Below, one piece after another: positions 14,073-63,251 of a stretch of 64,000 bases of DNA. Origin of the DNA: Lepidodermella squamata (lineage: Eukaryota; Animalia; Gastrotricha); NCBI GenBank assembly GCA_047495785.1, contig JBLDXI010000042.1, forward strand, positions 2,480,001 through 2,544,000. Direction: 5' to 3'. Both the position numbers and the translations under genes were made by a program. Within the stretch, counting starts at the first letter, position 1; every line of letters begins with the position of its first letter. The notes beneath the pieces were generated by a model. The model ran no database searches, had not been told where the DNA came from, and was given only the letters and a program-made list of their open reading frames with translations.

Positions 14073-15390
14073 TGTTAGGGATGGGCAATTATTAGTGAAT
14101 GGGCTACTATTGGAACAATTACAGTTAACCGAATATAATGCAGATACCCGAAGAAGAAAGCTTGTCAAAATTCAGCGTGATTTGCATAAGCAATCCATTG
14201 GCATTAGAAGGAGCCTCGAATCTCGAGTATGTTGGAATTTTTTACCGGTTTTCATGCCTGGGAAAACGTACATATTGCTGGTGAAAAATTCATGGAAGAA
14301 CTTGTTAGTTAGAGATAAAACTGAAGAAAAGCGAAGCGATTTCGATCAGTTTTTGATTCACAGTCCACTCTTCGGTTAGTTCTTTGACCATATCTCCGAA
14401 GAATTTTATGAGAGACAGTTCGAAACCTGTGGCTTGATCCCTTTCCGGTTTAATAAACATAATGAAACAATTTGTTTAATATGGTAATATGAAAATTTCG
14501 GTTTTAGCTGACCTTGAGTCAAAATTTCTTTTCACGATTAATCGACTCCTCAACGATCAAACGGTTAGCCCTTAGCTTTTTTCTTGGAGAGTCCTAAAAA
14601 CGCGAGGCCTAAAAATGTCGACCCATGGACGATTCGGAACCGCCCCGCGTGCCCGAGGCACTATAACAGCGATTCCCTAACTGTTGCACCTTGCAACGAC
14701 TGTTATATAGTTCTCGAAATTCTAACGGTCCCACAAAATAGGAACACTATGAGATTCCCAAGATTTCATGATATTTCTGCCGTAATCAAATCATAGAAAA
14801 ACCAACGAAATAAAAAAATAAAAAATAAGAAAAAAACGAAAAAAAGATTTGCGTCCGTCTGAACCGATGGGCTGGCTAAGGCGCACATTCACAAGCACTG
14901 TCCCGGTACCGCTCACCACGCACATCGTTAGGCTGCTTCCGTTAGGACCTGACCTTTGACGTGTCATTACGCAACCTGGGCAGCACGGCCTCCACCGCGC
15001 CGACCATGTTGATGGCGTACTTACACGGGGCGCTCGATCGACATGTGACATCCAGAGACAGGGCTCCCACCGGCCGGCCGTTCGGCAAGCCCGGCTCTCA
15101 AGTCGCTGAGTTACAGAAGCACGCCACTGCTTCCAGCCATTAGTTCTGTGCGCGAACGTGCTTTTGTAAGGCTTTTACAACAACACAACTGTTTATAACA
15201 GATGCACAGAATTAAAATGAGAAAATCTTTTGGACAATCTTTACTACAACATTTTTACAATCGTATCAAAATTTGCTAATGAAAGCCCTCCAAAGTCGCC
15301 AAGTCAAAGTCAAAATAACTGGTGAGAAACGAGAGCGCAAGATATCATCAATACATAAATACACACATCAATACTTAAATAATAAGAATA

Positions 15391-21483: not shown

Positions 21484-23945
21484 TTATGATGACCTGACGT
21501 GTAAATGTGTCTGAAAGGGGTTCAAATTTTTCCTGATTACATCGAAATTTACCAAAGCCAGGTTTATAGCAGCTATAATGCTCAATTCAATGGTAAGAAT
21601 TGACCTCTGAACCATTGGCGAATCTTTCGATGCAGCTAATGCCATTACAGAGGCAATGATAAGTATCGCGTTATTGCCAGCTGTTATACACAGGCGGAGT
21701 AGATTGCTGCGGTTGACATGGCCTTCGATCAGGTTGCGTTTTGGGTACCAGAACAGCAAGAAGTATATCAGCACGACTACATGTAGGAGAGACAAAGCTA
21801 AAGACCAGTCGAACAGAGACATTGAAACGCACAGGGATTCAACGATCGTTGTTTGAGTATCGGTTACATCATCATAGCTATCCTCTCGGTACGACGTAAC
21901 AATTCGAGGCGCATCAGAACTCATCCATCCTATTAGAGCGATGATGTTGGCGGAGAGGAAACACAGGCTGAAGGTGAAATTCTTTGCTGAATAGCTTAGT
22001 TGAGGATCATCCGGAGCTTGTTCAATGATATCTAATGAGAATTGGACATCAGCGATTCGATTTTGAGAATAATGAGAAAATGAAGACGAGTTTGTCCGAT
22101 CCTCTTCACGATGACTGGGCTGATGTAGCAGTCCTTTGATAGCAGAAAACCGGATAATAAGGTTGGAATGCAGGCAGCTAAGCGCTATTACGGCCAAGCA
22201 AACATCGAATTGGCATTTGATCGATGTCTCACTGCCGATGGAAAACAGGGTGGAGCTTAGACAAGTCATAGTGGTGCCGAGAAGGTAGATAAGCATCATC
22301 AACTTATCTGACCCATTTTTTGTCCGGCTTCTCAGCAGAAGGAGATTAGCAATTACAATGAGGATATTCAGTAAGCCGAAAAACCCTATTATACCGGTAG
22401 GAACTTGGGCCCGAACAACGTTCACCAACTTGTCATCACGTGGCGCATTGCCGTCAGGTGTAGACCATCTCAATTTTTGCAGAGGACTTATCGCCACAGA
22501 CGACAAATTGTTGAAATCTTCAAGTTGCATTTTGAAGTATGCCTGGAAGCCGTTACTCTGTTTCCAGTAGACTACATATTGGGTTTCGTAATCAGTCTCC
22601 AGCCTGGCAGAATATCGAACTCTTCCAACCCGAAGACCTTTGAAATCTACCGACCCTGCGGTTGAGTTGACGATTTTCATTACAAAATCCGGCCTTGTCT
22701 TGTAGTCTAGTAAGGAACTGTTCTGCTTTTTCAAGGCCTTTTCACCTAAATCCAGCACGAGTGCGGTTTGGGTGAAGACATCGAAGCAAACATGCCTCCG
22801 ATCGTAGTCAGCGCCTCTCCCGGAATTGGTGAAGTTGTCAAATAGCTGCTCAAATTCCTCAAGATCTGGCCCTAACGCAGTAGGTCCGTGATTCTCCATA
22901 GCTATAGAGGTCAGGCCAAGCCAGTAAGTTATACTCATTTGTTCAATAACCATTTGTCGGTTGCAACTACGAGGAAAGTTCTCGATTGTGAGAGGATCTA
23001 AAGCTTGTTGATTTGGCATGAGAAAAGCATATCTAGAACCCGTAACACCAACCCTGTGAGCATTACAAAGAAAGAGTAGGGCTGACGTAGCGTCAACAAC
23101 TTCCAAAACGACAATGCGGATTCCAGCAGCCAGCGCTGAAGCCATAAAAGATTCCTCTATGTCGATGACTGTGTTGAAATACGCAACGTTTATGCCAGCC
23201 TGCAGGCTCTGCCGGTACATTTCCGTTCCGGTTAAAATGTTTTGAGGACTGCCAGCATGCAGGAGGATGGCGATACGATTCCAGCCAGCTATCCTTTTGA
23301 TGAAGGCGACTCGAACGGGAATAGCGAGCTCGCCGCTAACTCTTGATCGGTAGAAATTCGGGTAAATGTCACGCTTAGCCGTGAAAATGAACGGCGAGTT
23401 GCAAGAAACGGCTACTGTCAACATGTTAAGATGATGGACTAATGGGGCGGTTCTCTACAAAACAAACCATGCTTGTAGCTCGGTGATTCATCTAAATTCA
23501 AACCTGGCAACCTGGCGTATAAGTTGGGCCGATAAAAACAGGTGAGAATACGTGGGAAGCGTTAGCCATCCAGAACTTGTCGTGAAAATTAAGAGCTGAA
23601 CTTGGCGAAAGGACACTATTCAAGCCTTCATCTTGAAATTCCAGCTCGACATGATAATCTGGCAAAATTGCCGGGTTTTTGTTCAACAGCTGCCTAGCTA
23701 AATCCATTGCAGCTCGACAATACTTTCCTAATAAATCGTCACCAATGAAATACTACGAACTTTTTATGCAAGTTATTCAAACCATTTCTCGGCAATGCTC
23801 CTGTTATAGGAATGTTGGCTAGCATTAACAATCGGATAGGTTTCAATTGGCCTGTCGCTTGCGCCACAGCTATTACTACTCGATATTTGACGAAAACGCT
23901 AATACAAGTTACCACAGCAAGAGCAGCCCCGACGTTCGACTTCAT
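21484..23945 (-). CDS. Divergent GABA-B-receptor-like class C GPCR (Venus flytrap + 7TM); 3 exons
   Basis: N-terminal hydrophobic leader, MDLARQLLNKNPAILPDYHVEL, FIGPTYTPGC, RDIYPNFYR, GWNRIAIL, then about 7 hydrophobic helices with no cysteine-rich domain. Confidence 0.75.
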
Positions 23946-25965: not shown

Positions 25966-28482
25966 TCAAACAACAGTCGGCGGGAAAACTTCATCTATGT
26001 CAATAACGGGCAGCTTTTCGATTTGCCTGAGATGTTCATCGAAACATTTCGAACATACAAAAGTGTCATCAGGGCAGCCAGCGCAGTAGAACGGCGTTCG
26101 ACGCGCTCTTATCCATATTTCAGCCGATGACAGGCCGCCTTCGGCCCGCAGTTTTGACAGGCACAGCGTGCAGACTGATTTTAGCGATTTCGTCTTGACG
26201 GGCTTTCTAACGTGCGCCGACAACGGCTCGGCGATCGTTTTCAGAACAGCCAATTTTTCGTCTTTCAATTTTACAGCCAATTTAAACTAGACAAAAAAAT
26301 CACAGAAAATTCCAGAAAAATTATAGCAAAATGTATACCGAGCCGGGCTTGGAAATTGACTGCTTCTTCTTCTCCTTTTTCGGGTTCAAAATAGGCGCTT
26401 TCATCACGGGTCTTGATTTGTGAATATCAATGCAGTTTATGCAGACAAACGGATAGCCGTAACATGATTCGCAGAATACTATCGATCTTTTCGGCGTCAA
26501 TCGCACGCCTTTAGCTTTACACTCCACGCATTTGCCATGTGTCATTCGATTGTTGGAAGAAACGCGTCGATTGCTGAACGAAAAAACGTGGGCTAACTTC
26601 TTAGGCCGACCTCGCATTCCTTTCGGCCGCGGCGGGTTGTTAATTGCACTCAATTTAACTTTCGACTTTGACAATGGAACAGTTTTCGATACAGCAGGTA
26701 AGCACAGGGGAGGCGAAAGGCTGAGAGGAATCGGGACATAGGTTACTTTCGCGTAGTTGTGGTCATTATGCGGCTCTTCTCGAACTAGAACGTCAGGAAT
26801 TCGGAGGCGCTCCATAAGAACGACTGGAACTAGATTACGATCGACAGCAGTGCGGGTCGAAGTGGCAGCTTTCTGACTCGACGATGACTGGCTAGACCCA
26901 GAAGATACTACAATTTGTTGCTGAGTTTCAATCACAACTGCTGGACGTTCGAATTTGAAAACTCGCTCGAAAACTCCCAAATTGGGATCCAAGTCAGGAT
27001 CCAAAGCGGGATAATCGATATTCTGTAATATTCAAATAAAATCACTGAGACAATCCAAGAGCTCACTTTAGCTTCTCAACGCAAAAATTTGCCGATAATT
27101 GCACGTTTTCGATTTAAATCTGCCCGAAGTAATCCATAAATCCCAAATCATAAGCAGCAGTAGTGCTCAGTCACTAAACATCAGGGACCTCATACCCTAG
27201 AGATGAAAAGGCTCATTTTTCCAGACAACTTATGCCAACCGACACGTGACTAATTTCCGCCTACAAACGATAGTTGACGGTTACAGGAAACTGGCTTGGC
27301 CAAAAATAGAATTTTGCCTGATTTTGCCTGATTTTTGCCGTAGTTACCGAAATATAAGCCTCCCCTCGTTTAGAAGCCTGTCTCATTTAGAAGCCTAGGT
27401 AAATTGGAATTCTTTGATGCATAGTCCTATCTCGAATAGTAGCCTAGGCTATTACGGCATATGTGCACTTCCGAGCTTAACGGTTATAAAAACAAAAAAT
27501 GCCTGAAGATGTTTGATAATCTGCGATTTATGATGATTTTTGCTGTGGCTCTCCTTATTATTCTTAATTTTCAGCTATTGGGCGACCTGGGTAATAGCTA
27601 GTAACGTAAAATTTGATAAGTTTTGAGACTGAAACACGCAAAATTATGTCACGCCTTCGTTGCATAAGCCTATCTCAAATAGAAGCCTAGTCTTGAATAG
27701 TAGCCTACTTTTCCCCATTTTTCGAGGTATCATTTTTGCAGAAATCCGGGTTAGTATTTCGGTAACTACGGTACTTGGTGGAACTACCGAATCCACTAAA
27801 TCGCTATCGACTGGAACAAAAATTGTTGAAACGCGCGATTTGGGTAGATTTGGGTAGATTTTCTTGAAATGTGGAGAACTCGAAATAACGATGCTTTGCC
27901 ACCGCGACTAGAACCCGAGAAATTTTAAATTTTCGTTTTTTCCAAGAAATGACATGCTTGAAAATTTACCCAAATCGCGTTTTCAACCATTTTGGTCCAG
28001 CCAATAGCGATTTTGAGGATTCGGTGGATCCACCAGAATACTCAATTTAGGGAAAACAGCTAGTTTACCTGATGCCCGGATTCTGCTATAACATAAGTCA
28101 TTGATGGCTCGACCTTGAAATGGTGGACAACGGGCGGGATATGGCAACCATGACACGGACTTTCTGACACGATCGGATCATTCAACACCAAAGACGAAGC
28201 CAAATTAGTATTCGACAACGACCGCTCCGAGTAAGTCGCCGGGTTTCTACTCGTTGTCATCGAAGGCGTGAGTGGCAACGGCACGGTGACCGGAGTCTGG
28301 CAGACGGCGAGATGTTCGAGCAAGAGGTCTGTTATACTTGCGCCATTCGACATGTGAATGAAAAGCTGGCAATTCCGCGGGCACCACCTGCCAGCCCCAT
28401 CCTTGTGGCCGTTCTGATGCTCGCTATACTGAATTATATTGCTCGTGGCAAATAAACAAATATCACACAAGTAACGAGACAT
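25966..28482 (-). CDS. Array gene B: C2H2+C2HC module, PxVxM, DHNY, AT-hook, 2 CRDs; exons 28482-28069, 27022-26339, 26286-25966
   Basis: Phase-0 GT-AG joins (SGHQ|NIDY, KPGS|FKLA) unite three ORF-track ORFs; intron 1 carries two MITEs. Confidence 0.75.
27338..27771. mobile_element. pogo/Tc2-like MITE (434 bp)
   Basis: 17-bp perfect TIR CCGTAGTTACCGAAATA; internal repeats TAGAAGCCT/TAGTAGCCT; TA on the right, TG on the left. Confidence 0.85.
27774..28038. mobile_element. MITE with ~80-bp imperfect terminal inverted repeats
   Basis: Left tggtggaactaccgaatcc..aaatcgctat..gcgatttgggtagattt matches the reverse complement of the right end; TA on both flanks. Confidence 0.75.
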
Positions 28483-45762: not shown

Positions 45763-48700
45763 TTAAAAATTGGCATAAGCAGTCAGACAGAACAAAAAGA
45801 CCAGTTTAAGTTCGCAGGCTGCCGTCGGTATTGACCCTGAAGTCTCCATCTTACGAATTTTCAACAACTCCTGGTCTTCGCTATCTTCATAGTTGAACTT
45901 CTTCCAATCCCATTGTTGAGTAGTCGGAAACAATTGCATCGCGAAAGCATAGTCATCGAATTTGATCTCTTCACTTGAATTTCGCTCCGTTATCGAAATT
46001 ACGAAAGAATTCAAATCTTGCGGATAAACGGCGACAGAAACATGCAGGTCGTTGGAGGCTTTCAAAGGAAATTCACTGTCATACAAAACCACGCCACTCT
46101 CATCGCGATAAACAATCACTCGCGGGCTGCAGACTGTTTTATCGTCGTAGCAAGTGAAGACAAAATGATCGCCCAAATCAACAGTTACAAGTTGAGTTCG
46201 AGCTTGACCAGCTTCGTAAACCATGTCCCCGTTAAATTTAGACTGATAAGCTCGAACAATCGTCGGAATCATGAATGTTTCACCCTTTGTCGTGAAACTG
46301 CACGCCGGCGGGCCCTGAACTTTGATCAAATTAAACTGAACCGGCTTGTTATTCGCATCGGTTATAGCGAAGACGCCCCAAGACCCGGCTACTAAAGGCC
46401 GAGATTTAACCGCGAGCTTCGAGCCTGATAACACCGCTTGAACCTCGCCGTCATTCGGCTGGAGAGATTTACCAACCGACGAGTGGAGATACTGCCAATT
46501 TGCAGCGTTTGTGACGTAAATCGGCAAAATAAAATTGGTCGAGCCACTTGCAAGATGATGAATCTGAAGATAGACCTCGTCGAAACTCTCGTAATTTGCC
46601 CAACTTTTTAGAATCAATCGTTTTTTGAAATAGTAACCATACGTATCCTCTCGACATGACTTATCGAAATCGCCAGTAAGTTCATCCTGGGAACAAGAGC
46701 AGCCGCCTTGGTAAATTAAACACTTTGAGAGACCGAAATTGAAGAAAAATCCAGAACATTTCGACTCGAGTTTATCGCATTCTTCCTGGCAGTCCTTGGG
46801 AATTTTTGCCGTGGTTATTTCGACGGCGTTATCTTGACATTTCGTGCAGTCCTGGGCGAATTTGTCGTAATTTTCAGACTCGGCATAGGACGTGTAGTAG
46901 CAAACTGGTACGTCGCAAAAATCAGGAATAATCCGCCTCGAATCCGCCTGCACATAACACCACGGGGCGTTGTAGCCCGGGCCAGGTAAAATTCGGCAAT
47001 AATTAGCCACGGCATCTGCGGGCAAAGTCTGATTCAGTAAATTCAAAGCAACTCGCCAGTCCAAACACTTCAATTTCCGACAAGCAGACCGACTTTTCAC
47101 ACCCTCATACTTCACATCCGTTGCTTTGAACAAATGGCAATCAAAAAGGGACCTGCCGATGGTTGGATGGAAGGTTGGTAAAATCAACAGCTCGACAACT
47201 AATTCGATTTTCTGCTGTCGTTTGAAGTCAGGATCGCCGATGGTGAAAGTGAATTTGTGAAGTCCAGCGTATTTTCTGCGGATAATTTCCACCGACCAGC
47301 CGGGAAGTGGCCGCGAGTCAGGGATTCGAAGATCAGCTCGAAACCTGTCGTTATTATTGTCGAATTTGAAAACGAATGGGGAATCTTGCCGATCAGTTTC
47401 ATAAATTAGCGGAAGGCATAGCGCCCCGTTTGGCGACTGGCAGAACCCAGTTTTGCGAGAAAAAGGCTGAACGAGAGATAGCTGGACGGAAAATATCATA
47501 GTGGTACCGGGTTCGAACCGGAAAATAACCCGACGGTTTGTAGTAAATGGCTGCCCAATTTGCCGCATAGTGCCGTTTTCTGCATCTCGGTTAGGCCAGG
47601 CTTGAATCAAAGTTCGGCAAACTGCATAGGTAGGCTTGCTATCGAAAACGGGGAACAGTTCCAACTTCGGATCGTAGGTAACAGTTGCGAACAAATCGAC
47701 CGAATTCGGGATCGGCTTTGGGACCAACAGCATGTAGATTGAAAATTCGCCGACTTGTTCACCTCCAAAACCGATTTTATATCGAGCTTGAATAGTATTT
47801 TCGTCCAATACCTTGAACTCCTGTGGATTTTCCGTATCTCTCCGACCTTGGTGATGAAAAATGGGAACGATAGTTAACCCGGCGATGTTAACACCCGTGC
47901 AAATGAAATCAAGAACTAGGACGGACGGGTTATTTGGCGGGCTTATCAATTTGACCCCTAAAGAGCCGAGAGTCGAGCGGAGGAGTGTTTCGTTCAACAT
48001 AACTCGGCAAGAAATTTCGGGGGTTACGGAGATTTTATGGTACTCGAACCTTTCATTGGCTTGACAACGGTAGAGGCCAGTGTCCTTAGGATCAGCTGAT
48101 CTGTTCGAGCCGCCGAGTTTCAGCTCGAATCCTAACCTCATAACCGAGTTTGGACCTTGAAATTCATCGTCAATGTTGAGAAAACGTTGCCAAATTGGGT
48201 CGAATTTACGCCAAAGTTTGTCCAATTTCAAATAATGTCTCGCACCCTCAAGCAACTGGCAAGGAATTACGATATCTTTCGCATTTTCCATGTAATTGTG
48301 ATATTCGTAATTCACCCAATCAACATTATCATTTGGCGAATAGGGTCCAGGATTTTCGAGTTTTTGATAGTAATGAACAACAGACGAATAACTTCCGCAT
48401 TTAAACTGAGACGGGTCGTTGCAAACACACCGTGTAATGAAGCAATTGCCATGTTCGCCTTGGCCGATTTCGTCGAACATGAATGATTTGCAATCATCCC
48501 TAAGATTGAGACAGCGCTGAGCGCAACTCCCCAGAGTCATGCCACCATAAATCTTGTGACCATCACTGTACATGCTGGACTGTTTTACTGGTTGAATATC
48601 CAAACCGGGATCGTGATGCCAAAAGACGTTAGAGCAATCGCATCTGCCGAAACGATGCGAGAAATAGTGTCTCAAAAATTTGTCGCCGGCTGAAAAAAAT

Positions 48701-51147
48701 GCAGTGAAAATTTCAATTCGAAATGAAAATTTGGGAGAAAACTAACATCCGCAAAACTCGGGAGCGCAATACATCAACTCGTCGATTGAATCTTCTGTGG
48801 TAATGCAAAATGGCACACGCCCGTCAGAAGGGTTTCGGCAATAGTTAGCAACGGCATCGCGATTCCATTTTTCAGGAATATTCTGACGCCTAGATAATAC
48901 AATTCTTCAATTATTGAAAAATTAAGCGGCGGAGATTTTACCAAGATTGCGGCCATTTGTTCCAATCCGGTAAAGAATTCCAAAATCGGCAGGGCTCTCC
49001 ACAAATCGTTCGGTTCATTGAACCGGCATACTCCAAGCCTTCGGGTGTTCGTCTGCAATCCTTCTCAAAAACTAAAAAAAGTCGGTAAAATCAGCAGGAA
49101 AATAATCGATAAACTGAACAAACTGCTTTCTTTGGCCTTCGAAAGTTTGACCGAAACTTGAGGAGAGTTAAAAGCTTGCAATTCACTTCCACTCTGGTCA
49201 GAGAACCAAACCGAGAAGCTTCCAGTAAGACCATCCCAGAGTGATTCATCCATTTCATAAGCGGATTGAAACATCCGAGGATTGCCGAAGTATTGAAGAG
49301 AAATATTAACGTAACCTTCGTCCACAACACTCGACTCAATTTCAATCATTTTAAACGGCATTTGATCAAATTGTGAATTCCGCTCGCCCTCAACTGATCG
49401 ATTTTTGTAAGTCCATTTTGCAAAAGATTGACTTTTTTCGATAGTATCTTGGCCAAATCGTAAATCAATTCCAAAGGTGCAGTCGGTTTCATTCCGACAA
49501 CTTTCGATTTCTTTGACAAAACAGCGATATACAACGTTGAGAGGCTGAAATTCTGGTACGGTGAATTGGACAACTTTCATTCCGAAATTCGTAACATTTT
49601 CAGCGACGACAGAACAGAATTTTTCCATCTGCTGCTGCAACTCGCTAAAAAACTGACACTTGTCACGTGATTTGCCAAAAAAGTAGGTCGGGAAATTTCC
49701 TTCGAAAAACGGAACGGAACTGCTGAGAGTCGTCAAGTAGTTTTCGAACGAATATAACACAGCTATTGTGTAGCGAACTCCTTGCGTCACATTCGCCAAT
49801 TTGTACCGAAATTCAATAGCGCTGAGATCGAAACTGTACTCGGCAGCTGTTCGGGTTGCCACGATAGGCGAAGGCTGGTACATCAAAACGTCTTCATCAG
49901 CGAAAACGATGAACTCTGGGTTGCAAATCAGCCATTTTGCGGTGGATAAGATTTTGCAAGCATGAAAACTTCGCTGGTAGCGCAATTTTATGCTTATTTC
50001 AACTAAGGAATTCGGCAAAATTTGCTCAAGACAAGACTCATCGCCAAAAATTACTGAAACTCCAAAGGTTGACCAGCTTCTACCGTGATCGATATAATGA
50101 ATTGATTCATTAACTTTGGCCGAGAACTCGAGCAAAGGTGTTTCAAGATGGGAAATTATGTGATATTCGATTCCAGCAGGAACAGAATTTCGAGAATAGT
50201 TCAGTCGATAAATGCCCTCGTGTTGATTCATTCCGTCAGAAAAATTCAAGTAAGCCCGGCCTTTAATCAAACCATGCCTCGTGAAATGAGCGAAAGCAGC
50301 GGCTGGAGGTGAAGTGACTTCCTGGTTGATGATATCACGTTGGAACATGTATTCCTCATCAATCAGTTTGCTCCAATTAGTTTCGATCCAATCTTTAGGC
50401 GCAGAAATGAACAGGCTTGAAAGCGAATAATTTGACCACCTCTTATCGACAAAAGTTTCATCAACAATCGGGATGTTGAAATGTGGAACCAGATCTGAAT
50501 CAAATAACATTGATCAGCTGACATAAATCAACGAAAAAAATATTACCTTCCATGAAAGCTAGTCCACGAAGCACGTACCAGATGCGAATACTCCCGAGAA
50601 TAGTATTGTTCAATTCCGAAAATTCCTGGCTTCTGTACAGAAGAGAAACCTGGTACTCCCCATTAGGATTTTCGCGTAATGCAGTCAACCGGTTGAAATT
50701 GTACTTGGTCAAATGAAAGGAGATCGAAAATTTTGAAATTTCGGAATCATGGGAAACCGCAATGCTGCGGCTCTCTCCGAGTCCAAGGTTGTCGACAGTA
50801 ATATCCTTCAGCAGACCGTTACTTTCAGAAAATCCAGACGCTTCAAATTCAATGAAATTATTCCGAGAAATAATGAAGATCGGCTCGCAATAGATCCGTT
50901 CGCCATCCTCGCACAACTTATGGGGAAGCTTTTCAAGGGAAAATCTAATGATCAGTTTCACATCTTCCCGCTGCGGCCAAGCCGAAAAAAGGACCTGAAC
51001 CGACGGACTCGGATAATCGGTGATTTTGTAACCAGATACAAGTACTCGAAATTCAATATTCGAGATCAGGTCATTTTTCTTCTCAGAACTGACTACGAAT
51101 TGTGAGATTAGAAGCGAAATCAGGACGGTAGTAAGTAACCATCTCAT
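45763..51147 (-). CDS. Large secreted/GPI-type kringle-PAN(apple)-Ig-like mosaic protein, 1723 aa; exons 51147-50547, 50494-49124, 49071-48942, 48889-48747, 48689-45763
   Basis: Four 52-57 nt GT-AG introns give a 5172-nt open frame; signal peptide MRWLLTTVLISLLISQFVVS; kringles DCRRTPEGLEYAG..NYCRNPSDGRVPFC and DCHLF..YEG..NYCRILPG..APWCY; PAN-like CAQRC..CKSFMF..C and CQEEC..CSGFFF..C; Ig-like DTGLYRC; hydrophobic C-terminus. Confidence 0.75.
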
Positions 51148-62038: not shown

Positions 62039-62413
62039 TTATTTCGAGCTGGTGTACTTGGTGACGGCCTTGGTACCTTCTGAAACGGCGTGCTTGGCAA
62101 GCTCGCCAGGCAGAAGGAGACGCACAGCCGTTTGTACCTCTCGACTGCTGATGGTGGCCTTCTTGTTGTAGTGGGCCAGGCGCGACGACTCGAGAGCGAT
62201 GCGCTCGAAGATGTCGTTGACGAACGAGTTCATGATGGCCATAGCCTTGCCGGAGATGCCGGTGTCAGGGTGAACCTGCTTCAACACCTTGTAGATGTAG
62301 ATGTTGTACGACTCGCGGCGGCGATGACGCTTTTTCTTCTCACCAGCGGTCTTCGGCTTCGCGGCCTTCTTCGAACCCTTCGAGGCAACTTTACCAGTAA
62401 CCTTCGGCGACAT
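62039..62413 (-). CDS. H2B: Histone H2B
   Basis: [44 protein letters not shown]; intronless; true start MSPK at 62413. Confidence 0.98.
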
Positions 62414-62807
62414 GATGATTGATTTAGATTGTAAGCGGTGATAAAGCGAAAAGTTAATACAACTTCCGAACAATCTAGGCACGCAATTTCGCTATCGTTA
62501 TAACATCCGGTCGGCATTAGCGCGCGCGTCCTGTTACGCTAACGAGTGTGGCGTTTCAAATTAAGATGCGCACGTGCCTCGCAGCCAATAAATTTCGAGC
62601 AACGACGCGCGCGCGGTAAAACTACGCAATTTGATTGGCTAATAAAGTAGTAAACACCGAGTTTGAAAATTTGAACTTTTTAAATTGGAAAATCAACGCC
62701 AAAGTGGGGTATATAAGAGAAAATCAGGTGCTCGGCAAAATTTGTTCGTGCTCAGACTGCAAATTTCGCATTCTTTTCGCTTTTAAAACTCAACAACATC
62801 ATCAACA
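62414..62807. promoter_or_regulatory. Bidirectional H2B/H2A promoter
   Basis: AGCCAAT ~62583 and ATTGGCT ~62634 (CCAAT boxes); TATATAAG ~62710 for H2A and TTATAA ~62497 for H2B. Confidence 0.7.
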
Positions 62808-63251
62808 ATGTCCGCTCCAGCTGCTGGTCGTGGTAAGGGAGGCAAGGCTAACCGCCAGAAGGCCAAGACGAAGTCATCGCGTGCTGGTCTCCAATTTCCG
62901 GTCGGTCGTATCACCCGTCTGTTGAAGCGCGGTAACTACGCCGAGCGTGTCGGCGCAGGTGCGCCCGTGTACCTCGCCGCCGTCATGGAGTACCTGGCAG
63001 CTGAAGTGCTCGAGTTGGCCGGTAACGCCGCTCGTGATAACAAGAAAACGCGCATCGTGCCTCGCCACATCCAACTGGCCATCCGCAACGACGAGGAGTT
63101 GAACAAGCTGCTGTCGCACGTTACGATTGCTCAGGGTGGTGTTCTGCCCAACATCCAGACCGTCCTGCTGCCCAAGAAGTCGGCTGAGGCACCCGCTGCC
63201 AAGCCGGCGTCTGGTGGCAAGAAGAAGGCCGCCGCTAGCCAATCTCAGTAA
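62808..63251 (+). CDS. H2A: Histone H2A with extended C-terminal tail ending SQSQ (H2A.X-like)
   Basis: [51 protein letters not shown]; 147 aa. Confidence 0.97.

Follow-up and report, generated by a model that had tools for sequence, protein, structure and literature searches.

Cysteine-rich domains (CRDs) of the PiggyMac/piggyBat type, found in piggyBac transposases and domesticated PGBD proteins (PF13842; PDB 6zop and 9c0f), share an eight-ligand layout in which seven Cys/His residues come after an upstream His, the criterion that we took from PMC8086355. The partners of piggyBac CRDs are of two kinds: the CRD of T. ni PB binds TGCGT DNA, and those of Pgm and Tpb2p bind histone H3 tails. 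Short docking motifs for chromatin cofactors have been described in other proteins, such as the HP1 box of KAP1/TRIM28, the [DE]HxY motif (HBM) of THAP-family and other HCF-1 partners, and the PLSLV string by which Drosophila Hairy binds CtBP (PMC1950541). The AT-hook is defined as an Arg-Gly-Arg-Pro core with positively charged flanks (PMC3353895). Here, we describe Gene B, a predicted gene of the gastrotrich Lepidodermella squamata in which strings resembling all of these motifs stand beside CRDs with this ligand layout. The analysis covered 64,000 nucleotides of contig JBLDXI010000042.1 (the window; positions are counted from its first letter).

The features of Gene B are collected in Table 1. 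The ATG of exon 1 at 28482 has tttttagA directly before it, and the exon ends at the donor CAG/GTAAAC. Its product begins with a zinc domain in which a C2H2 finger (MSRYLCDICLF...H...H) precedes CPRNC...H...C; this N-terminal domain is kept in at least seven genes of the array to which Gene B belongs, with C6, C9, H22, H26, G31 and P35 invariant in their alignment (A2). Intron 1 holds a 76-bp inverted repeat (27776-27851 versus 27962-28035, 84% identity). Residues 1-143 of exon 2 are a Ser/Pro/Val-rich linker that contains every motif reported here. PVVLM supplies the earliest in-frame Met of exon 2, and the open frame reaches 65 codons further upstream. The HP1-like string would be made only if exon 2 is spliced as modeled. 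A Pfam scan found no match to the THAP domain in any Gene B exon, and the comparison with THAP proteins is one of analogy only.

Table 1. Predicted features of Gene B, with positions in the window
Feature	Position	Strand	Description
Gene B (predicted)		-	3 exons, ~472 codons; two GT...AG introns; all junctions phase 0; ORFs intact
Exon 1	28069..28482	-	138 codons; N-terminal zinc domain; no Pfam family
Intron 1	27023..28068	-	1,046 nt, GT...AG, many repeats
Exon 2	26339..27022	-	228 codons, both ends in phase 0; linker, then CRD1; no Pfam family
VPVVLMERL, HP1 chromoshadow-ligand-like	26804..26830	-	core PVVLM 26813-26827, exon-2 residues 66-70
DHNY, HCF-1-binding-motif-like	26753..26764	-	exon-2 residues 87-90; context EPHNDHNYAKV
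PLSLS, CtBP PxDLS-like	26714..26728	-	exon-2 residues 99-103; between the others; absent from the original prediction
GMRGRPKK, AT-hook-like basic arm	26597..26620	-	core RGRP 26603-26614, exon-2 residues 137-140
CRD1	26420..26590	-	His145 (LAHVF)...CVEC...CESC...CINC..H; 8 predicted zinc ligands
Intron 2	26287..26338	-	52 nt, GT...AG
Exon 3	25966..26286	-	106 codons + TGA at 25966-25968; holds CRD2
CRD2	26032..26214	-	exon 3; His in SAHV...CTLC...CAGC...CSKC..H

Gene B lies within a tandem array of 44 CRDs, every one of them on the minus strand. When these modules are aligned (A1), the Cys positions are invariant and the upstream His is found in at least 90%; the predicted ligands of CRD1 are H145, C165, C168, C184, C187, C194, C197 and H201 (exon 2 numbering). 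The pattern of an upstream His and CxxC-CxxC-CxxC-H, with two zinc sites in a cross-brace, fits the PiggyMac/piggyBat type. The Pfam piggyBac zinc finger (PF13842, zf-Tnp_2) matches 12 of the 44 modules, with a best E value of 1.6e-7. The CRDs of Gene B itself are below the Pfam threshold (no match for CRD1, E 0.34 for CRD2), and against a profile that was built from the 42 remaining modules and excludes those of Gene B, they score 32.5 bits (CRD1) and 44.8 bits (CRD2), exon 3 having been compared with both Pfam and this local profile. On the strength of the Pfam matches, the profile scores and the ligand pattern, the original description of these domains as piggyBac-derived stands at the family level. 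An AlphaFold2 model of CRD1 made from A1 has a mean pLDDT of 80, above 90 in the core, and its secondary-structure elements are ordered as in Pgm. A Foldseek search with this model returned nothing at E<1 (6zop ranked third and 9c0f ninth), and a PDB profile search for the CRD gave no significant match.

Unlike piggyBac transposases and domesticated PGBD proteins, which have a catalytic core, the genes of the array have none. No transposase family was matched by Pfam in any scanned ORF, and no DDE/RNase-H-like core was seen N-terminal to the CRDs; the array genes, of about 125-470 aa, are made up only of zinc domains and linkers, with one to three CRDs per protein. Also in contrast to piggyBac and PGBD, the CRDs of the Gene B type are in tandem, in 44 copies, and joined to an N-terminal domain of the C2H2 type that is unrelated to them. 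To call the CRDs of Gene B a DNA-binding domain, as had been done originally, is an assumption, since the PiggyMac CRD, the nearest of the solved types, binds the tail of histone H3, not DNA.

The three strings first noticed in Gene B, VPVVLMERL, DHNY and GMRGRPKK, are all present in a single reading frame of exon 2, upstream of the two CRDs, and in accordance with the published definitions of HP1 ligands, the HCF-1-binding motif and the AT-hook. They occupy exon-2 residues 65-142, that is, 78 aa, which agrees with the "about 80 aa" of the original prediction. DHNY had been placed exactly, inside HNDHNYAK (26747-26770), and the other two ranges needed adjustment: 26804-26827 holds PVVLMERL only and is 3 nt short, and 26597-26614 covers RGRPKK rather than GMRGRPKK.

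The linker that carries them appears to be private to Gene B. An exhaustive search of 1.84 billion protein representatives found no relatives of exon 2 besides one match, P0001 (E 4.6e-10), which we rejected as an artefact: it is a prokaryote-style repeat protein of 2,659 aa with no CRD, whose six near-identical repeats give about 32 bits each to query residues 77-118 (single-pair BLAST E of ~1e-5). Homologs of exon 2 were found neither by word search nor in metagenome contigs, exon 1 alone had no match in metagenome contigs, and the N-terminal domain alignment A2 had none in a word search. A GPCR-like gene lies at 21.5-23.4 kb, and the class-C GPCR-like exon neighboring Gene B, searched as a synteny route, had no homologs. 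Within the array, tblastn found no alignable linker in the paralogs (about 30), and the motifs are absent from all of them. That the linker is a decayed CRD was considered and rejected, with a score of -3.6 bits against the 42-module profile and no paralogous tblastn match. A stretch of the linker, EEPHND...PPLCLPA, resembles the module starts NEPHRL...GPCLPC of the paralogs. Single-sequence AlphaFold2 of exon 2 gave a pLDDT of 34 throughout, even over CRD1, and hence is uninformative on linker disorder.

Judged from sequence and position, the AT-hook beside CRD1 is the most credible element and the only string that looks likely to be functional. RGRPKK ends two residues ahead of His145, which is predicted to be the first zinc ligand in CRD1. 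The open segments of the window (33.8k aa) contain the RGRP core a single time, and 0.4% of exon shuffles produce it; its flanks are basic (PRPKGM-RGRP-KK), in line with the definition of the AT-hook core. The Pro before the core (PRGRP) is missing, with Met136 in its place; this Pro is not strictly required, since hook 1 of HMGA1 has Gly there (PMC3353895). Pfam AT_hook reported nothing, also when the 26-aa peptide was searched by itself with an E cutoff of 10, the model being very short and such matches being dropped by the HMMER filters. Gene B shares R-G-R-P with hooks of the HMGA type and has Lys-Lys after the core, Lys three residues ahead of it and Arg five residues ahead; whereas HMGA is a disordered protein with multiple hooks, Gene B has a single one, placed as an arm on the N-terminal side of a zinc domain.

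The HP1-type string fits its motif well, and the motif is very common. P66-V67-V68-L69-M70 has the hydrophobic(-2)-x-[VI](0)-x-aliphatic(+2) core, and DRNLVPVVLMERLR fits all positions of the HP1a 14-position consensus (-7 to +6), with Arg at +4, where a basic residue is near-invariant (PMC12526061). According to the same study, the simple HP1 motif is found in more than 50% of the fly proteome. The string falls short of the Drosophila signature of three to six basic residues at -4 to +4, LVPVVLMER having one basic and one acidic residue. Shuffling the residues of the exon yields PxVx[LMV] in 38% of cases, and the long open segments of the window contain it 15 times; the 14-position consensus is satisfied by 39% of shuffles and by 38 sites in the window, so that passing it carries little weight and the string taken alone is at chance level. 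A narrower pattern, P[MVLIRWY]V[MVLIAS][LM], occurs in 2.8% of shuffles and three times in the window. Gene B has in common with the KAP1 box (P486-R487-V488-S489-L490-E491-R492) Pro(-2)-x-Val(0)-x-Leu/Met(+2), Glu(+3) and Arg(+4); however, KAP1 is basic at -1, -4 and -5 (R487, K484 and R483), positions taken in Gene B by Val, Leu and Asn. The two proteins have no sequence homology. KAP1, which likewise carries Glu at +3, is a validated ligand.

In the HCF-1-type string, D87-H88-N89-Y90 supplies all the [DE]-H-x-Y anchors. Deep mutational scanning has found that x is small or non-aromatic, Y+1 uncharged and Y+2 not Pro, with bulky aromatics or Val/Ile at H-4 in some backgrounds (bioRxiv 10.64898/2026.03.19.712392). 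Gene B follows the flank rules (x = Asn, Y+1 = Ala, Y+2 = Lys), and it has Pro at H-4, a weak fit where a hydrophobic residue is preferred. It has in common with THAP-family and other HCF-1 partners the three anchors, a Y+1 residue that is small and uncharged, and a Y+2 other than Pro; Asn at x is also found in the HBM of DIDO1, but Gene B is unlike THAP proteins in the H-4 Pro, instead of a bulky hydrophobic residue, and in the lack of a THAP domain. [DE]HxY occurs in 0.7% of exon shuffles and twice in the open segments of the window (33.8k aa). Among candidate human peptides of the HBM type, only 69 of 863 (~8%) bind HCF-1. For complex predictions, the HCF-1 study took an ipTM above 0.8 as high interface confidence.

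The additional PLSLS string has a chance frequency of 7.3% in shuffles of residues 56-140. A cluster of four classes (HP1, HBM, CtBP and AT-hook) in 80 aa arises in 1.3% of shuffled windows, and among the 336 open segments, Gene B is the only one with at least three classes within 80 aa. The rarity of this cluster leans toward function. Of the four classes, three were picked post hoc; for the one that is independent, P is 0.07-0.16. The HBM and the AT-hook are rare individually, yet they were chosen post hoc from an open motif catalogue.

We give a probability of about one half to the reading in which Gene B codes for a zinc-finger protein with a plausible AT-hook arm, while PVVLM, DHNY and PLSLS are indistinguishable from chance. 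Gene B would then be a lineage-specific nuclear protein of about 472 residues, with a C2H2-plus-C2HC domain, a Ser/Pro/Val-rich linker of about 220 residues that is peculiar to it, and two CRDs. These CRDs belong to a tandem family of 44 copies that arose from a piggyBac zinc finger of the PiggyMac/piggyBat type and has no transposase core. From its position and the definition of the AT-hook, the RGRPKK arm most likely adds to CRD1 an affinity for the AT-rich minor groove or for nucleic acid or chromatin in general. PVVLM, DHNY and PLSLS may be considered candidate sites at which HP1, HCF-1 and CtBP, respectively, would dock, at most young innovations of Gene B; they are inseparable from chance because of the composition of the linker and because no ortholog or paralog was found with a linker in which conservation could be seen. 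As plausible candidates, the putative HP1 and HCF-1 motifs may recruit these cofactors in the manner of KAP1 and THAP proteins. If the motifs work, "convergent", the word originally used, would be the right one, since homology to THAP and to KRAB/TRIM is absent.

The foremost alternative, itself unlikely, is that chance produced all four strings, that of the AT-hook as well, in a linker that evolves fast and has many basic residues and prolines. RGRPKK would then be just part of a basic patch, which may serve nuclear import, and would have no specific role on DNA. A linker for which no homolog was found in anything searched, and no counterpart in any paralog, is what rapidly drifting sequence would look like; Pfam AT_hook is silent on RGRPKK, which lacks the initial Pro of PRGRP, and a basic arm at that position is found in no other CRD module of the array, which means that the family can do without such an arm. 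Against this speak the low frequency of RGRP in shuffles and its single occurrence in the window, its place flush with the first zinc ligand of a domain of the chromatin- or DNA-binding type, as expected of a functional arm, and the rarity of the four-class cluster.

We also find doubtful the view of the original prediction, in which the linker would be a genuine composite cofactor platform, with PVVLM docked in the HP1 chromoshadow dimer, DHNY in the HCF-1 Kelch domain (and PLSLS, added here, in CtBP), and the protein held on DNA by the AT-hook and CRDs, the logic of KAP1 and THAP proteins having been convergently reinvented on a piggyBac-derived scaffold. The details of the strings suit this view: PVVLM agrees with the 14-position consensus, including the basic +4, and has the KAP1-like Glu(+3) and Arg(+4), DHNY has its anchors and an acceptable x, Y+1 and Y+2, a fourth co-repressor motif lies amid the strings, Gene B alone of the 336 open segments has three or more classes (four or more in 1.3% of shuffles), and such motifs would be expected a priori in a multi-zinc-finger host protein. 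However, the HP1 class is at chance and has one basic residue versus the three to six proposed, about 8% of candidate peptides of the HBM type bind HCF-1, the choice of three of the four motif classes was post hoc (P = 0.07-0.16 for the fourth), none of the roughly 30 paralogs has the motifs, and the HP1-like string is made only if Gene B is spliced as modeled. Claims of this pattern-matching kind, made without conservation or binding data, are usually wrong, and in the case of Gene B, the HP1 consensus in particular discriminates little.

Less probable still is a young lineage-specific transcription factor that has combined transposase-less piggyBac fingers with a de novo strip for HP1, HCF-1 and CtBP and an AT-hook arm. 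If it were true, the KRAB-ZNF/KAP1 and THAP/HCF-1 logic would have been reinvented independently and caught at birth in an expanding array, with some 30 tandem paralogs lacking the linker.

Finally, a mistaken gene model, or decay of this copy, is very unlikely; in that case exon 1 would be a short gene by itself and exon 2 would either start at the Met of PVVLM or not be expressed, so that the HP1-like string is never made. The exon 1 ORF does run on to a stop at ~28060, intron 1 is about 1 kb long and repeat-laden, unlike the 52-nt intron 2, and exon 2 has no in-frame ATG upstream of PVVLM, but other array genes have the same N-terminal zinc domain at their start with CRDs after it, the junctions of Gene B are canonical and phase 0 throughout, the 228-codon frame of exon 2 is open for 65 codons upstream of that Met, and the zinc ligands are intact (8/8) in both CRDs.

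Should the motifs work, Gene B would be an example of a transposase-derived zinc finger turning into a chromatin regulator by the de novo acquisition of short docking motifs, and its motif-less tandem paralogs would be natural controls. Even if the motifs are inert, the locus is unusual as a tandem array of 44 transposase-less CRDs of the PiggyMac type with a private N-terminal zinc domain.

The reading that best fits Gene B, a three-exon gene of about 472 codons, is that of an intact zinc-finger protein specific to its lineage; the family of piggyBac-type cysteine-rich domains (CRDs) to which it belongs is best taken as transposase-less and of the PiggyMac (Pgm) type. Its junctions are phase 0 throughout on the minus-strand reading, and its exons were each translated and searched separately. 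Three short strings, originally predicted to be HP1-type, HCF-1-type and AT-hook motifs, lie in one minus-strand frame of exon 2, which reads ...NLVPVVLMERLRIPDVLVREEPHNDHNYAKV...PRPKGMRGRPKKLAHVF... DHNY occupies 26753-26764, as predicted; VPVVLMERL is present at 26804-26830, one codon beyond the end first assigned (26827), and GMRGRPKK at 26597-26620, the interval first given (26597-26614) spanning RGRPKK only. The three strings fall within 78 residues, in agreement with the earlier estimate of about 80, and the two CRDs come after them. In exon 2 no in-frame methionine precedes that of PVVLM, so the HP1-like string is made only with exon 1 spliced on, a junction suggested by the architecture of the paralogs. 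The inverted repeat in intron 1 may be an inserted miniature inverted-repeat element, and such an insertion may account for the 1-kb length of this intron against the 52 nt of intron 2. Near it, a unit of about 30 nt (ctaggct.ct.tt.gagatagg...) is directly repeated.

Features of the window, with minus-strand exons and introns listed in reading order
Feature	Position	Strand	Remarks
Gene B exon 1	28482-28069	minus	138 codons; tttttagA before ATG; donor CAG/GTAAAC
Gene B intron 1	28068-27023	minus	1,046 nt
Inverted repeat in Gene B intron 1	27776-27851 and 27962-28035		76 bp, 84% identity
Gene B exon 2	27022-26339	minus	228 codons
PLSLS, CtBP PxDLS-like candidate	26714-26728	minus	between DHNY and AT-hook; regex panel
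Gene B intron 2	26338-26287	minus	52 nt
Gene B exon 3	26286-25966	minus	106 codons + TGA
Tandem CRD array	25060-57112	minus	~30 small genes, 44 CRDs, one to three per gene
N-terminal zinc domain (approximate)	28482-28300, 25836-25760, 29744-29560, 32046-31870, 53121-52940, 54754-54560, 55537-55350	minus
Long intron-less ORFs inside CRD array (three)	45763-48675, 49065-50510, 50500-51147	minus	970, 481, 215 aa
SRP RNA gene, metazoan, full-length	14843-15137	minus	Rfam RF00017, 174 bits
Class-C GPCR-like open exon	21484-23424	minus	646 aa; ANF_receptor E 3e-5; 7tm_3 E 4e-4
Histone H2B/H2A pair, divergent	62039-62482 and 62808-63251	minus and plus

The window is eukaryotic and metazoan, with a GC content of about 42%, dense genes and very short GT-AG introns (52 nt in one case). 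Gene density, intron length and the lack of any match on record speak against a human source. The C-terminal tail of the histone H2A is long, rich in Lys and Ala, and ends in ...AASQSQ; an exact look-up in the protein collection found no protein identical to this H2A. The GPCR-like exon is probably a very divergent receptor with weak signatures, since a word search at E up to 1e-5 gave no homolog. Among the ORFs inside the array, Pfam scans assigned no family to the 970-aa and 481-aa ones; the first is Cys-rich and extracellular in appearance, and the 215-aa ORF starts with a signal-peptide-like segment.

All 44 CRDs found by pattern scan (CxxC...CxxC...CxxC..H) from 25 to 57 kb are on the minus strand. 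In an alignment of these modules with 30 upstream residues, five cysteines are invariant, and at least 90% of the modules keep one more cysteine, a proline and a histidine 10 to 25 residues before the first cysteine. A piggyBac derivation, as originally proposed, is supported at the family level: the Pfam piggyBac transposase zinc finger (PF13842) matches 12 of the 44 modules (best E 1.6e-7), the modules match exactly the eight-ligand pattern of the PiggyMac/piggyBat type, and the two CRDs of Gene B, both under the Pfam threshold for PF13842, reach 32.5 bits (CRD1, exon-2 residues 144-206) and 44.8 bits (the second) with a profile built from the remaining 42 modules. The AlphaFold2 model of CRD1 built from this alignment (mean pLDDT 80, core >90) has the same strand/helix order as Pgm; Foldseek gave no significant match for it, and in the non-significant list 6zop (PiggyMac CRD) ranked third and 9c0f (piggyBat) ninth, among C1 and B-box fingers. 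The array genes (about 125-470 aa) are not PGBD-like domesticated transposases, since they are too short for a transposase core and Pfam scans detected no such core in the ORFs covered. That these CRDs bind DNA is assumed: TGCGT DNA is the ligand of the T. ni PB CRD (PMC5861402), the Pgm-type CRD contacts the histone H3 N-terminus and does not bind DNA, and heterochromatic H3 tails are the ligand of the Tpb2p CRD (PMC3861120). A private N-terminal zinc domain recurs in seven or more of the array genes; its pattern is M-x-R-Y-x-C-x2-C-x-F-x-T-x-N...H-x3-H followed by G-x-W-C-P-R-x-C...H-L-x2-C, and no Pfam family scored above threshold for it. Several sub-blocks at 32 to 45 kb were recently duplicated and are nearly identical in the order of their modules.

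Among the Gene B motifs, the AT-hook is the most credible. It fits the definition of an Arg-Gly-Arg-Pro core with positively charged flanks, and the first Pro of PRGRP, absent here, is replaced by Gly in HMGA1 hook 1 (PMC3353895); the very short Pfam AT_hook model reported nothing for it. RGRP is unique within the 33.8k aa of the window's open segments and arises in 0.4% of exon 2 shuffles. Because RGRP (exon-2 residues 137-140) and the following KK lead straight into Leu-Ala-His145, whose His is predicted to be the first zinc ligand of CRD1, the hook would form the N-terminal arm of this domain. The arm at the corresponding position of Pgm is flexible, and no other CRD module in the alignment has a basic arm there. 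This AT-hook-like arm is probably functional.

The HCF-1-type string, EPHNDHNYAKV, carries the three HBM anchors, with Asn at x (as in DIDO1), Ala at Y+1, Lys at Y+2 and a weakly hydrophobic Pro at H-4. Its flanks are compatible with all three deep-mutational-scanning rules for HCF-1 (a small residue at x, no charge at Y+1 and a residue other than Pro at Y+2; bioRxiv 10.64898/2026.03.19.712392). The window contains two [DE]HxY strings, and 0.7% of exon 2 shuffles yield such a string. A consensus match is weak evidence alone, since just 69 of 863 candidate human peptides are likely HCF-1 binders (bioRxiv 10.64898/2026.03.19.712392).

The HP1-type consensus class discriminates barely. DRNLVPVVLMERLR agrees with the HP1a consensus at 14 of 14 positions, including the near-invariant basic +4 (PMC12526061), and PVVLMER has Glu at +3 and Arg at +4, as does the validated KAP1 box (P486-R487-V488-S489-L490-E491-R492; PMC12126490). 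Exon 2 is rich in Val, Pro and Leu; the 14-position consensus appears in 39% of its shuffles and 38 times in the window, and PxVx[LMV] in 38% of the shuffles. The simple motif is present in over half of the fly proteome (PMC12526061). Positions -4 to +4 hold one basic residue, against the three to six proposed (PMC12526061). A narrower, ELM-type core, P[MVLIRWY]V[MVLIAS][LM], is found in 2.8% of shuffles.

An uncurated panel of 15 regexes for cofactor motifs, which can give leads but does not amount to a formal test, also picked up PLSLS, unmentioned in the original prediction; Hairy binds CtBP via PLSLV (PMC1950541). Exon 2 of Gene B is alone among 336 open segments in holding at least three motif classes within 80 aa, for which shuffles predict 0.34 segments per window (27% of shuffled windows have one or more), and 0.013 for at least four classes. 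Three of the four classes entered the panel because they had been sighted in this sequence, which leaves the fourth motif as the independent gain; shuffles of the stretch give P = 0.07 for a CtBP string, or 0.16 when a string of any of the 12 remaining classes is counted. As a cluster this is suggestive, yet short of significance on the scale of a genome scan.

No relative of exon 2, CRD1 included, was found by word search, in metagenome contigs or, as a genuine match, among 1.84 billion representatives searched exhaustively; exon 1 in metagenome contigs and the family alignment in word search gave none either. The single library match to the DHNY region (P0001, E 4.6e-10) was rejected, its score being summed over repeats: it is a prokaryote-style surface protein of 2,659 aa that contains six almost identical copies of a unit of about 205 aa, with DDDGNPHNYEEITVEPHFSSTIPPILS in every copy. 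None of the paralogs in the window shows RGRP or a linker that can be aligned, and [DE]HxY is absent from the array paralogs. The DHNY stretch as a decayed CRD module was rejected with the profile of the other 42 modules.

A full composite docking strip born de novo in the linker is quite improbable. The recruitment of HP1 and HCF-1 as cofactors, for which the evidence speaks neither for nor against, is unlikely. The three candidate docking strings (PVVLM, DHNY and PLSLS) are not distinguishable from chance matches. From the comparisons made here, the linker appears private to Gene B, and its three candidate cofactor-docking strings are possibly functional.
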